Sequence record: NC_042060.1 | DNA: 64,000 nt | Strand: one strand, 5' to 3' | In this document: positions 7,257 through 52,094 of the stretch, piece by piece | Layout: each line of letters opens with the position of its first letter | Numbering within the stretch: position 1 is the first letter of the stretch | Position numbers and translations under genes: made by a program | Notes under the pieces: generated by a model | Databases searched by the model: none | The model's input: only the letters and a program-made list of their open reading frames with translations | What the model was told of the DNA's origin: nothing

Positions 7257-12587
<5,331 letters not shown>

Positions 12588-46998: not shown

Positions 46999-48525
46999 TT
47001 AATATTTCAATAGACTATTGATAAAAGCATTAGGGTCATAACGGTTATTTGAAAAAGCCGCCATTACATCACACCCTGGCTGATCTTTAAATCTGATATC
47101 TTCAGGAATATCGAAGTCAGGGAACATTAGTTTAATATACTCCCTAACCTCTTGATCTCGTAGATATGGAATCTCCACCATGTAATCAACGCGACCTTTC
47201 CTTAGAAGTGCTTTATCAATATTCTCAGGATGGTTTGTAGTTAGAATGGTCATTGTCTCATCTAGTGGAACAATGCCATCTAGACCATTTAATAAAGCTG
47301 ACAAAGTTAATCCGCTAGCCGGTTGTTCATACGTAATTCCATTCTTCATACACTTCTTTAATTTCCACCATCGGCGAATTGTGGTAAATAATGGATCTTT
47401 CTCATCGGCCCATTTTGAAACACCCAATTCAGCCATAGCGTAAGCACTTATCCCAAAACCTTGATCATCGCTATTTTCATCAAAGATATAGATGGTGTCA
47501 TTAAATCCAACTACAGAGTATCCTTCATAGTCATCTTTAAGATCAACCCATGCAGATGGATATTTCTCAATTAAATCAATAAAAGAATATTTCCTCTCTA
47601 ATTCTTTTATCTCTTTATCTAGTTTTACAGGATCATTTAAAACGCGATCTTTAACTGCCGGGGTATCATCGAAGTCCTCAATTAAAAGAATATTACCTTT
47701 AGGTAGTGTAGTAAATGCCCGCCTAAGACTATCATTAGTCATAGAGGCTAGTGATAGCGCACTAACATTTTTATTAAAATGTGAGGCAATTGCTTTACTG
47801 ATCGAGGTTTTACCAGTACCAGGAGGACCTGTTAAAACACAAGTGAATTTATAGGGTAGTCCACGATCATCGTACCATTTCCGATCAGAATAGAATTCTT
47901 CAATCTTATTAAGGAATTCTTCTTTGATCTCTTTACGCAAAATCACCGTGTTGATATCGCGTTTAGTAACTTCAATCTCATTGCCCCAACGGTTACCATC
48001 CCAATGTGAAATAGTCAGACCCCTTTCATTTGGGCGCCAATGGTAAGCATCTACTAAATCAATAATTAGTTTACTACTCCTAGATAATCCACGGATAGTA
48101 ATATCCATTTGATCTCGACTGGCATTTTGACTATCCCGGCGTGCTTTTACAAACCAGAATAACCTACCTTTAAACAGAAAGAAATGTAAGCCAAAACCAA
48201 CACCAATTTTCTGTTTAGTTGCACTATAACTTTGCTCATCAACATTAGTTGAAAAACGTCGATTAAATCCAGCTAATGGCTGCTTAATATACCATTCCAT
48301 GAAACAATCAAAGTTCTTCTCGTTCAGCCCATTACCCATGTTGGTAATATGTAGACTAACTGTAAACTGATTTAATGCGAACCTAGCTAGTTTACTTGGT
48401 AAGCCTCTTAGAGTGGTCCAGAATAAACCACCAATTGCCATTCCGATAGCTCCACCCATAACCATATTCTTCTGAGAGATATCGATGAACATGGCGTAAT
48501 ATTGCAATAAGGTTTCTATAATCAT
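46999..48525 (-). CDS. BCS1-like membrane-anchored AAA+ ATPase
   Basis: N-terminal TM; KRDINTVIL..WYDDRGLPYK; GPPGTGKT; ILLIEDFD; SGLTLSALLNGLDG; TTNHPENIDKALLRKGRVD. Confidence 0.88.
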   Translation of the reverse strand: MIIETLLQYYAMFIDISQKNMVMGGAIGMAIGGLFWTTLRGLPSKLARFALNQFTVSLHITNMGNGLNEKNFDCFMEWYIKQPLAGFNRRFSTNVDEQSYSATKQKIGVGFGLHFFLFKGRLFWFVKARRDSQNASRDQMDITIRGLSRSSKLIIDLVDAYHWRPNERGLTISHWDGNRWGNEIEVTKRDINTVILRKEIKEEFLNKIEEFYSDRKWYDDRGLPYKFTCVLTGPPGTGKTSISKAIASHFNKNVSALSLASMTNDSLRRAFTTLPKGNILLIEDFDDTPAVKDRVLNDPVKLDKEIKELERKYSFIDLIEKYPSAWVDLKDDYEGYSVVGFNDTIYIFDENSDDQGFGISAYAMAELGVSKWADEKDPLFTTIRRWWKLKKCMKNGITYEQPASGLTLSALLNGLDGIVPLDETMTILTTNHPENIDKALLRKGRVDYMVEIPYLRDQEVREYIKLMFPDFDIPEDIRFKDQPGCDVMAAFSNNRYDPNAFINSLLKY

Positions 48526-49363: not shown

Positions 49364-50236
49364 TTAGATTTTTACAGACCAGTGTTGCTCGAATTCCTGA
49401 TATAGGAAATTGTCGGATGCGTTATCCCAATTTTCTCGATCGGTTACACCATAATAATGGAATTCTAGTTCAGTAGGTCCACCAACAAAACCATTCTTAG
49501 CATAGCTATAAACTTTGCCATTGGTTAGCTTAATAAGTACATCCACATAGAAACTATTACGGTTCCATATTTCATTGTGGATGTACTTAAATACCACACT
49601 GTGGATGTACTTAAATTGCGCACTTGGTTTTCCGAGTACACTATAATAGAATTTACGGATACCTATTTCGGTCTTGAAATTAAACTCACCGTTGCGAATG
49701 TTGTTAGAAACAATACGTGTTAGTTTATTAACCCGATTTTCTTCACCGAGTAGATAGATCCCGGAAACACTACATCCATCTCCTATTGATCCATTATTAA
49801 CTAGTGGATCAACACCATATTCATCAGTGAAAATGGTTTTGATAACCTCTTTACCTTCTCGACGCACCAACATATTCAGATGACCATCTTCGATATATGA
49901 CATATGGCTAGGCTGAATATATTCACTTGTATCGACGATAACATCATTCGCCATTATATTAAACAGTAGATGGTTTACCAGATCACTAATACCTTTAAAA
50001 CGAATGGCTTGGTTCGCTGTATTTAGATCGACATACACCACGACATCAATAATGCCTTGTTTTAGTGATTTGTCATCTTTGTCAGTAGTTGTATCAATTT
50101 TTACGTAATTTTGATATAGTTCACTAAAACAAGATATGATGTCATCATGTAGTTTAATTACATCAGATCCATTTCGTTCAAGCGCTTTAAGCGATACGTT
50201 AAAACCAATACGAATTTTATTAGAACGACGTGCCAT
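49364..50236 (-). CDS. hypothetical protein, paralogue of 48522-49307
   Basis: 290 aa, AGGTG RBS. Confidence 0.8.
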   Translation of the reverse strand: MARRSNKIRIGFNVSLKALERNGSDVIKLHDDIISCFSELYQNYVKIDTTTDKDDKSLKQGIIDVVVYVDLNTANQAIRFKGISDLVNHLLFNIMANDVIVDTSEYIQPSHMSYIEDGHLNMLVRREGKEVIKTIFTDEYGVDPLVNNGSIGDGCSVSGIYLLGEENRVNKLTRIVSNNIRNGEFNFKTEIGIRKFYYSVLGKPSAQFKYIHSVVFKYIHNEIWNRNSFYVDVLIKLTNGKVYSYAKNGFVGGPTELEFHYYGVTDRENWDNASDNFLYQEFEQHWSVKI

Positions 50237-50640: not shown

Positions 50641-50667
50641 TCCTATTAGTTTATTGATAGTACACTT

Positions 50668-50686
50668 GTAATATAGATCTTAAATA
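50668..50686 (-). promoter_or_regulatory. early promoter motif
   Basis: TATTTAAGATCTATATTAC on the minus strand. Confidence 0.65.
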
Positions 50687-50695
50687 AATTATGAT

Positions 50696-51160
50696 CTAAC
50701 CATTTAAAATAGATAAAGCCTCTATATGCCAATGGTGTATTAGTTCTTCTTTACTAATAATATTATTGAAGTAGTTTAACCGATGTGATACCATTAATTT
50801 AGAATGCATATCGACTTCACTACTTACCTTAATCACCCCAGTCTCTAATAATTGCAGAGAGCCAACATACGCAAATAAAGTTGGTTTTAAATACCAGTGT
50901 TCCCTATATTGTTTTTGATCAGGTACATTTCCTATAATGTAGTCAGTAGAATTACTTCGGTATGCGTAAATAGTTGATTTAGAACCAAGTAAATTAAGAT
51001 CGATATCATAACTCCCGCTTTTAGCTGCAATACATTCAATAACTGATGGAGCCACACATATACGGTTGGTTACACTGTCTTCGCCATCAGCTCTATTACT
51101 TGGAATATATGGCCTTAATAAAACATAATCCCCAAGGTATACTGTCGATATGTGATACAT
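50696..51160 (-). CDS. putative ADP-ribosyltransferase-fold protein
   Basis: YHIS, RICVAPS, IYAY, VPD..REHW in ART strand order. Confidence 0.6.
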   Translation of the reverse strand: MYHISTVYLGDYVLLRPYIPSNRADGEDSVTNRICVAPSVIECIAAKSGSYDIDLNLLGSKSTIYAYRSNSTDYIIGNVPDQKQYREHWYLKPTLFAYVGSLQLLETGVIKVSSEVDMHSKLMVSHRLNYFNNIISKEELIHHWHIEALSILNG

Positions 51161-51175
51161 AATTAACCTATTTAA

Positions 51176-51703
51176 TTAAAACAGATAACGCTCTGTTACT
51201 GAACGATATTGTGACATGATGTTTAATGGATCAACATCCACTGGTGCTTTAGTGACAGTTAAGCGAGCACCTTTTAAAAATTCACCAATATCTAATTTCC
51301 TTACAGTAACATCATGGATAGTGTTTTTCGTAATCCACTCAGTATCAATGCTATTGTGAGGATTATTATTCTTAATCCATTTGTCAGAGTCCCTAAATGG
51401 AATGGTATAAACATACACAACCATTTTTAAAATATCACTTTTATCGATATTATTTTGACAATAGATTGTAATATCCCTATCAACAGTAGCATATCTATCA
51501 CTATCAAATAACTTTTCGATAGCGCTACCAATACCTAAATAAGATGCATCTTTTTCAGATGACGTTGCATATAGGTATTGGTTAGACTCAATACCATCCC
51601 ACATAACAAGTTCACCAGATCTTTTAAATCCTGGCATTAATTCATCTTGTTTATAAAGAGAACCATGGTAAAGTAATTCTGGTTTATTCATAATAAAATC
51701 CAC
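51176..51703 (-). CDS. putative H-Y-E class ADP-ribosyltransferase (Arr/PARP-like)
   Basis: LYHGS, LYAT, VYVYTI, TEWIT; likely start ATG 51691. Confidence 0.7.
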   Translation of the reverse strand: MDFIMNKPELLYHGSLYKQDELMPGFKRSGELVMWDGIESNQYLYATSSEKDASYLGIGSAIEKLFDSDRYATVDRDITIYCQNNIDKSDILKMVVYVYTIPFRDSDKWIKNNNPHNSIDTEWITKNTIHDVTVRKLDIGEFLKGARLTVTKAPVDVDPLNIMSQYRSVTERYLF

Positions 51704-51737: not shown

Positions 51738-52094
51738 TCAAGGTAACAGTGTGGCCGTATTGAAGTGATTGGTTACTGCTTCGATCAGCATATGCTCGAT
51801 GTTGATTTTGTAGTATTCCGGTTCTTCGTTCAATTCCCAAATGACAGTCGCACGTAATAGTGCAGGTGCTATGAATCTAACTACCTTACCATGTGTGTCA
51901 AACTCTACATTAAACATTGCATAATGTTCAGTGGTATGATCTTTGTAAAAAGTGAAAGTACCAGCGTAACTGCGAACCTCTATTTCACCGTGAACACTGG
52001 AGTAGACTTCCTGGTGGAATACTTTACCTTTAAGGCGTGTATTCTCTTCAATGATATTTACCAATTCTTTCAATTTGTCTTTATCTAGTTGCAT
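51738..52094 (-). CDS. hypothetical protein
   Basis: 118 aa, AGGA RBS. Confidence 0.8.
   Translation of the reverse strand: MQLDKDKLKELVNIIEENTRLKGKVFHQEVYSSVHGEIEVRSYAGTFTFYKDHTTEHYAMFNVEFDTHGKVVRFIAPALLRATVIWELNEEPEYYKINIEHMLIEAVTNHFNTATLLP

Follow-up and report, generated by a model that had tools for sequence, protein, structure and literature searches.

The locus and its genes

We analysed a 64,000-nucleotide (nt) stretch of DNA from sequence record NC_042060.1 (hereafter the window), and within it two adjacent genes that a sequence-only reading had proposed to encode proteins of the ADP-ribosyltransferase (ART) fold. The window matches Pseudomonas phage PA7 (NC_042060), a phiKZ-like, nucleus-forming jumbo phage, at 100% identity, and its coordinates are those of the record. 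Across PHIKZ280-283.1 its DNA is 99.8% identical to that of phiKZ, and the two genes are the orthologues of PHIKZ282 and PHIKZ283, which are annotated as hypothetical in every record. We refer to their products as gp282 and gp283. Conservation and structure prediction suggest that gp282 probably represents a new ART family of the His-Tyr-Glu (H-Y-E) type. The genes are laid out as follows:

51176..51691, minus strand: gp282-like coding sequence, 171 amino acids (aa); PA7 gp070, orthologue of PHIKZ282, with a full-length match to PHROG 13483
51161..51175, minus strand: intergenic spacer of 15 nt, in which AGG precedes the ATG of the gp283-like gene by a few bases
50696..51160, minus strand: gp283-like coding sequence, 154 aa; PA7 gp069, orthologue of PHIKZ283

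The two open reading frames (ORFs) that the sequence-only reading had delimited, 50696-51160 and 51176-51703, are indeed present on one strand (minus) and 15 nt apart. For the gp282-like gene, the best supported start is the ATG at 51691, which is used in PA7 and with which the homologues and PHROG 13483 agree, and not the GTG at 51703. The RefSeq entry of PHIKZ282 (NP_803848.2, 153 aa; L001, 5177-5638) begins 18 codons downstream of the PA7 start (the codons at window positions 51638-51691, minus strand). Because its start sits 18 codons inside the gene, this entry lacks the conserved first strand, including His9, and judged by its homologues the 171-aa form looks like the real product of PHIKZ282.

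Conserved residues and predicted fold of gp282

Three short motifs, numbered from the ATG at 51691, characterize gp282: LLYHGS (residues 7-11), YLYAT (40-43) and DTEW (116-119). Their codons and their places in the structural model are:

51659..51673, minus strand: codons of L7-Y8-H9-G10-S11, on the first beta-strand (residues 6-11 in the model); proposed His motif for binding nicotinamide adenine dinucleotide (NAD+)
51563..51574, minus strand: codons of L40-Y41-A42-T43, on a strand (40-43) that is followed by a long helix (46-62); proposed nicotinamide-stacking Tyr
51335..51343, minus strand: codons of T117-E118-W119, at the beginning of a strand (118-121); proposed catalytic Glu

A first search returned 46 relatives of gp282 and a profile search 162 (162 clusters at 90% identity), and conservation was counted in an alignment of 88 diverse members. 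His9 was present in 87/87 sequences and S11 in 84/87, while L40, Y41, E118 and T121 were each present in 88/88. The H, Y and E columns of LYHGS, LYAT and TEW, the motifs in 51176-51703 on which the sequence-only reading had relied, are thus invariant across the family. In the same alignment W31, D32, E35, N37, Y95, N110, N113 and T121 are also invariant, and no Arg is. These eight further residues are not known to correspond to any of the classic ART sets.

The AlphaFold2 model of gp282 is of high confidence (predicted local distance difference test, pLDDT, 92.9; predicted template-modelling score, pTM, 0.85). H9, Y41 and E118 each lie on a predicted strand (6-11, 40-43 and 118-121, respectively), in the order expected for an ART core. 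In the ART clade classification that we used (PMC9503650), a His, a Tyr and a Glu conserved at these strand positions are the mark of the H-Y-[EDQ] clade, and the residue profile of gp282 would place it in that clade as defined there.

When the PDB was searched with Foldseek, KptA (9ldi) was the first match of gp282 (expectation value, E, 0.13; probability 0.90; template-modelling score, TM, 0.33) and the pierisin-1 ART the second, the rest being noise. Against the viral structures of BFVD, the list was led by one homologue and by A0A5J6VI63, an unnamed giant-virus protein, and all named matches were ARTs (Arr-like, PcfJ-like, ART-PolyVal, DarT and PolyVal ART), the best of them Arr-like (E 5.8e-3, probability 1.00, TM 0.41 on the query and 0.68 on the target). 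A0A5J6VI63, an uncharacterised protein of 317 aa from a Megaviridae environmental sample, was the second-best BFVD match (E 8.9e-5, probability 1.00), a similarity between models which hints that the gp282 fold is also present in giant viruses of eukaryotes. In sequence comparisons, the Pfam family matched by most gp282 members, tied with one unrelated family, was ART-PolyVal, although weakly (E 0.072, 2/47 members).

We compared gp282 with KptA directly, taking a true KptA (PF01885) that is encoded about 5 kb from a gp282 homologue at one locus and building a 10-sequence profile from it. In the hhalign alignment, gp282 residues 1-54 matched the start of the KptA NAD+ lobe, with LYHGS on LYHGT and the next strand and helix in register, and gp282 residue 1 fell near residue ~96 of the 202-aa KptA. 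gp282 thus starts at the point where KptA enters its NAD+ lobe, so that the N-terminal RNA-binding lobe is missing entirely.

Set beside the known ART clades, gp282 shares with the H-Y-[EDQ] clade (PARP/diphtheria-toxin type, DarT, phage N4-like, p0068-like and ART-PolyVal) a first strand of the form h-h-H-G-S, a Tyr-bearing strand followed by a helix, and a later Glu, and DarT and PolyVal ARTs are among its viral structure matches. It differs from that clade in that no family profile matches it, in its extra invariant residues and in a C-terminal extension of about 50 aa. Tpt1/KptA and Arr, of the H-H-h clade, supply its best solved-structure match and its best named viral match, respectively, and with Tpt1/KptA it also shares the first-strand motif PxxLYHG[ST] and a following helix-strand-helix that aligns over about 45 residues. 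Unlike these enzymes, however, gp282 has Tyr and Glu and not H-H-h, has no KptA RNA lobe, and matches neither Pfam PTS_2-RNA nor Arr.

One relative of gp282 has an additional domain: in P0096 (314 aa; positions 6001-6945 of L003, a metagenomic jumbo-phage contig of 125.7 kb), a gp282-like domain is fused to a YAcAr SLOG domain (E 2.8e-10). This was the sole Pfam-annotated YAcAr SLOG fusion among the 120 relatives listed, of 162. YAcAr SLOG is a ligand-binding domain tied to nucleotide or ADP-ribose derivatives.

The gp283 family

The motifs of gp283 are MYHIS (residues 1-5), RICVAPS (33-39), VPD (79-81) and EHW (87-89). The sequence-only reading had singled out YHIS, RICVAPS and VPD..EHW in 50696-51160; all are present and fall on the most conserved columns of the family. 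Two of these blocks hold most of the residues discussed below:

51044..51064, minus strand: codons of R33-I-C35-V-A-P-S39, on a strand (33-37) that is followed by a helix (40-48), where typical ARTs have Tyr or S-T-S
50894..50926, minus strand: codons of V79-P80-D81...E87-H88-W89, an invariant acidic pair, with a helix (80-85) and a strand (88-90) in the model

A word-indexed search returned only the cluster of gp283 itself, and an exhaustive phmmer search returned 179 representatives that share the N-terminal ~105 residues, so that the family comprises at least 179 clusters at 50% identity. In PHROGs it corresponds to families 25542, 5043 and 10766. Conservation was counted in 81 of the 179 representatives. 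D81 and E87 are invariant (81/81 each), R33 is found in 80/81, Y67 and W89 in 79/81 each, C43 in 78/81, C35 in 77/81 and H3 in 75/80; position 37 is A, S or C, position 39 is T or S in 70/81, and position 85 is Thr in 66/81. The motifs of gp282 and gp283 are only three to five residues long, and they can be taken as beyond chance because they coincide with invariant or near-invariant columns of two large families. In the AlphaFold2 models of both proteins the motifs fall on beta-strands, ordered as in an ART core.

The protein consists of a conserved N-terminal domain of about 105 aa, with an ART-like predicted fold, and a variable C-terminal part of about 40 aa in which model confidence is low. 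In the PDB, Foldseek ranks 1-26 were all ART toxins of the Arg-Ser-Glu (R-S-E) type, namely cholera toxin/LT A1, the Xenorhabdus Rhs toxin TreX and the pertussis-like PltA, with Arr lower; the best matches had E 0.046, probability 0.90 and TM 0.38-0.45. The lower-ranked matches include MazF and Hcp folds, the non-ART probabilities being at most 0.05.

The small domain of gp283 resembles the R-S-E toxins and T4 Alt/ModA/ModB in having a strand that leads through an [AS]-P-[ST] turn into a helix, and an invariant Glu on a later strand; its residues 37-39 ([ASC]-P-[TS]) are a partial likeness of their S-T-S. Unlike them, it has His3 and not Arg on the first strand and T-x-E87 and not [EQ]-x-E, and no sequence similarity is detectable. 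We know of no counterpart in the R-S-E toxins of its two near-invariant Cys and its invariant Asp. A further difference from those toxins is that gp283 is a cytoplasmic phage protein, with no sign of secretion or of a B-subunit partner. Compared with the H-Y-E set, His3 and Glu87 are conserved, R33 and C35 stand in place of the Tyr on the strand-helix unit, and Tyr67 lies on a later strand.

In one large relative, P0224 (1083 aa; L008, 2971-6222, metagenomic), a gp283-like domain (residues 433-538) is flanked on one side by a P-loop kinase-like region and on the other by a GNAT acetyltransferase. By analogy, this layout resembles that of phage multidomain polyvalent effector proteins.

Distribution and independence of the two genes

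The gp282 family occurs in Pseudomonas jumbo phages (phiKZ, PhiPA3, 201phi2-1, PS119XW, Phabio, Noxifer and others) and in Erwinia phage Wellington. The gp283 family is found in unrelated phages, for example P. putida phages of about 200 kb, in which its genes stand alone, and on many metagenomic phage contigs. Adjacency of the two was seen only in Phikzvirus, in 46/46 Phikzvirus-level genomes; since their DNA is 95-100% identical here, this adjacency is inherited and was not kept independently. The gp282 homologues of PhiPA3, 201phi2-1 and Wellington have other neighbours, with no gp283-like gene among them.

Neighbouring genes were also clustered across 45 viral-contig (jumbo-phage) loci, nearly all on contigs of 240-325 kb. 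A gp283-like neighbour was found in 1/45 gp282 loci, PA7 itself, and the commonest neighbour family of gp282 homologues was present in 13/45 loci at varying positions; a conserved partner gene for gp282 was therefore sought among these 45 loci and rejected. The possibility that gp282 and gp283 are tandem paralogues was likewise rejected: comparison of family against family with hhalign gave a probability of 0.3-0.4%, and the window holds no further member of either family. The genes are independent of each other and not a conserved module, whether of writer and eraser or of toxin and antitoxin.

The contig that supplied the KptA comparator (L010) carries the label Paraburkholderia sp. BCC1886, with a length of 219.5 kb in Logan and 286 kb at NCBI, and encodes both the true KptA (PF01885; 2587-3195) and a gp282 homologue (8001-8492). 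With its dense small ORFs, its MazEF and RelE pairs and a DUF6817 gene directly upstream of the gp282 homologue, it looks like a large phage or plasmid-like element.

Expression, dispensability and phage context

In published RNA-Seq data (PMC10914614 supplement), the counts at -2, 2, 4, 6, 8 and 10 min were 0, 133, 342, 481, 604 and 738 for PHIKZ282 and 0.2, 218, 550, 842, 1057 and 1333 for PHIKZ283, and those of the non-early comparators PHIKZ001-004 were below 25, near background. Because PHIKZ282 and PHIKZ283 are transcribed by 2 min after infection, both are immediate-early genes. In the same early data, counts drop about four-fold from PHIKZ281 to PHIKZ282 (window 51738-52094 and 51176-51691, respectively) and rise again at PHIKZ283, which suggests partial termination or separate transcript ends within the PHIKZ281-283 row. 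Both proteins are listed in a gradient proteomics table (PMC10914614), and PHIKZ283 is also listed in a table of size-exclusion chromatography with mass spectrometry (SEC-MS).

In two transposon-sequencing (TnSeq) tables, PHIKZ282 has 8 and 16 insertions and PHIKZ283 has 7 and 19 (bioRxiv 10.1101/2025.11.23.690004, Tables S2 and S3, respectively), whereas chmA and the major capsid gene have 0 insertions in Table S2 and few, with read counts of at most 20, in Table S3. Since both genes tolerate transposon insertions, they are dispensable in the laboratory. They belong to the region from about orf184 to orf304 plus orf1-20, which the TnSeq authors describe as largely non-essential and link to host interaction and defence (bioRxiv 10.1101/2025.11.23.690004). 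A role in host takeover or counter-defence fits both genes because they are early and accessory. The sequence-only reading had proposed a tandem modification module for host takeover, counter-defence or NAD+ handling; the early, accessory nature of the genes agrees with the first two purposes, while the module itself finds no counterpart in a conserved tandem, adjacency being confined to Phikzvirus and the families being unrelated by hhalign.

That reading had also recognised no macrodomain or NADAR eraser in the window, and a Pfam scan of 94 window ORFs at E<=1e-3 bore this out, returning no Macro, NADAR, ARH, Nudix or ART family. This holds for the window only, since phiKZ does encode an eraser, the macrodomain protein AdfM (gp104), which removes DarT2 marks from DNA (PMC13309987). 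In addition, phiKZ gp184 is Tad1, a sponge. Tad1 and AdfM resemble gp282 and gp283 in belonging to the same phage, in lying in the same region (~orf184-304 plus orf1-20) and in their link to NAD+/ADP-ribose chemistry. They differ in that they bind or erase ADP-ribose-derived molecules from host defences, whereas gp282 looks like a predicted writer. Across the searchable literature, neither PHIKZ282 nor PHIKZ283 is named in any main text.

Other features of the region

The spacer that follows the gp283-like gene (50641-50695, minus strand) contains an AT-rich stretch that ends in TCTATATTAC, followed by TAGGAG and the start of the next gene:

50668-50677, minus strand: AT-rich TCTATATTAC element, between the gp283-like gene and the next gene

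Judged by its position, the stretch could be a phage promoter. When the window was scanned with the decamer, a pattern taken from the window itself, with at most one mismatch allowed, it was not enriched (11 matches against 11.3 expected), and for this reason no promoter is claimed. Scans for sigma-70 promoters and terminators gave chance-level results, with nothing convincing from the simple terminator scan.

Two further genes on the same strand encode proteins with domain matches. At 46999-48525 (minus strand), the 508-aa orthologue of PHIKZ286 has two Pfam domains, an AAA ATPase (E 1.5e-16) and, above the Pfam cutoff at E 3e-11, the N-terminal domain of BCS1; such an arrangement is that of the mitochondrial BCS1 translocase and is unusual in a phage. 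At 49364-50236 (minus strand), the orthologue of PHIKZ284 has a sub-threshold match to the N-terminal domain of Legionella SidC (E 1.8e-4, 21 bits against a cutoff of 25), which may be due to chance.

Interpretation and alternative explanations

Taken together, the data are best accommodated if gp282 and gp283 are products of two separate early accessory genes, small soluble proteins whose predicted folds are closest to the ART superfamily, with gp282 a likely NAD+-dependent transferase; for this reading as a whole we see the chances as balanced. The predicted structures make a fairly good case for an ART in gp282 and a weak one in gp283. For gp282, we consider the ART fold itself likely, and real transferase activity, to which its model and conserved residues point, a tentative assignment that falls slightly short of an even prospect. 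For gp283, which by its model may be ART-like with an atypical residue set, the ART fold is a matter on which we would lean neither way, and an NAD+-linked activity is doubtful. From predicted structure and conservation we infer NAD+ binding, catalysis and a class of target; this evidence is of modest strength, and its direction is consistent for both proteins.

On this interpretation, gp282 would be an early, cytoplasmic, NAD+-dependent ART of the H-Y-E type, most likely an active one. His9 on the first strand and Tyr41 on the next core strand would hold NAD+, Glu118 would activate the bond between ribose and nicotinamide, and ADP-ribose would be transferred to a protein or nucleic acid of the host in the first minutes of infection. 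Much less certainly, gp283 may use NAD+ or a ligand derived from ADP-ribose. In its boldest form, the proposal would make gp282 an unrecognised active H-Y-E ART that ADP-ribosylates host nucleic acid or a component of host gene expression within two minutes, and gp283 a second widespread, miniature ART-like family with a new His/Arg-Cys/Asp-Glu active site; we regard this version as possible but on the whole improbable.

Several results weigh against this interpretation. The ART fold that the sequence-only reading had assigned to both proteins is supported in that the best Foldseek matches are ARTs, but the E-values are weak: neither protein had a PDB match at E<=1e-3, and TM values of 0.3-0.45 lie under the usual threshold for the same fold. 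Neither the two proteins nor the two family profiles had a significant match in Pfam, NCBIfam, PADLOC (including its DarT models) or the PDB, and searches of PHROGs with both proteins returned only families with no assigned function. Alignment of the gp282 family with the 10-sequence KptA profile reached an hhalign probability of 7.5%, with seven robust columns, all in the PxxLYHG block. The gp283 model is of moderate confidence (pLDDT 77.0), being good over residues 1-115. The H-Y-E set claimed by the sequence-only reading is strictly conserved, on the expected strands, in gp282, whereas gp283 has neither a typical H-Y-E nor a typical R-S-E set. Finally, no biochemical report on either protein was found in the searchable literature.

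These points raise the question of whether the ART likeness is an artefact of weak scores, the true fold being some unrelated small alpha/beta type in one of the proteins, most readily gp283, or in both. His3, Cys35, Asp81 and Glu87 of gp283 could then, for example, make up a metal site or the centre of a thiol-type hydrolase; alternatively, the proteins could bind host factors and have no enzymatic activity. All PDB matches have E of at least 0.046 and TM below 0.5, no sequence profile ties either family to ARTs, MazF and Hcp folds appear among the lower gp283 matches, and C35 and C43 of gp283 are without counterpart in the residue sets of the three ART clades (PMC9503650). However, the ART matches are not scattered, since they fill the top 26 places for gp283 and all the named viral ones for gp282, the non-ART matches have very low probabilities, and the conserved residues occupy the same strand positions as in ARTs; we therefore consider an artefact unlikely, while giving it real weight. 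A more specific proposal, that gp282 is a phage RNA 2'-phosphotransferase of the Tpt1/KptA type serving RNA repair after cleavage of host tRNA or mRNA, draws on KptA as the top PDB match, on a PxxLYHG block identical to the start of the KptA NAD+ lobe and on the occurrence of KptA-family genes in jumbo phages (PMC7824862). Yet the invariant residues of the KptA profile, R20, H21, R68, R79 and R124, have no conserved counterpart in gp282, which has Tyr and Glu where the KptA alignment has H128 and no Glu; PF01885 does not match gp282, and one large element encodes a true KptA as well as a gp282 homologue. With the RNA lobe and the invariant Arg and His residues missing and so low an hhalign probability, we rejected a Tpt1/KptA enzyme as scarcely credible.

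Other explanations accept the pocket or the pairing and assign a different function. One or both proteins might possess an ART-like pocket for NAD+ or ADP-ribose and transfer nothing, but bind or break down NAD+ or immune signals derived from it, and in this way counter Thoeris-, TIR- or SIR2-type defences as a sponge or hydrolase. The early and dispensable nature of both genes, their position in the accessory, defence-related arm of the genome, the YAcAr SLOG fusion in a gp282 relative, the precedent of Tad1 in phiKZ and the residue set of gp283, atypical for a transferase, would all agree with such a role. The invariant Glu118 of gp282, at the catalytic position of ARTs, suits catalysis better than mere binding, and no named structural match is annotated as a sponge protein; on balance we think this explanation rather unlikely. 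It has also to be asked whether gp282 and gp283 are a functional pair, either a writer with its regulator or immunity protein or a toxin with its antitoxin, given that the genes are neighbours on one strand with only 15 nt between them, are co-transcribed early and with similar time courses, and are kept together in all 46 Phikzvirus-level genomes. Those genomes, however, are nearly identical at this locus, the homologues in PhiPA3, 201phi2-1 and Wellington have other neighbours, PA7 itself is the only one of the 45 loci with a gp283-like neighbour, and gp283-family genes stand alone in unrelated phages, which makes a functional pair very improbable.

Significance

phiKZ is the model nucleus-forming jumbo phage and a candidate for therapy. 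In the laboratory it can do without about 70% of its genes, and many, PHIKZ282 and PHIKZ283 included, lack an assigned function. Phage ARTs are already well known and have been reported in surveys of jumbo phages (PMC7824862, PMC9503650); if confirmed, gp282 and gp283 would be new families within this known superfamily, in a heavily studied model phage. Both families are large, and none of Pfam, PHROGs, NCBIfam or PADLOC assigns them a function, so that confirming the assignment would provide annotation for many phage genes in one step. If the ART assignment of gp282 is true, an immediate-early enzyme that uses NAD+ would offer a specific proposal for the action of the phage on the host cytoplasm ahead of nucleus formation, and gp282 would join the known ADP-ribose traffic around phiKZ, that is, host DarT2 and the phage proteins AdfM and Tad1. 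It would also suggest an NAD+-dependent layer of takeover or counter-defence in phages that are thought to rely mainly on physical shielding and on their own RNA polymerases.

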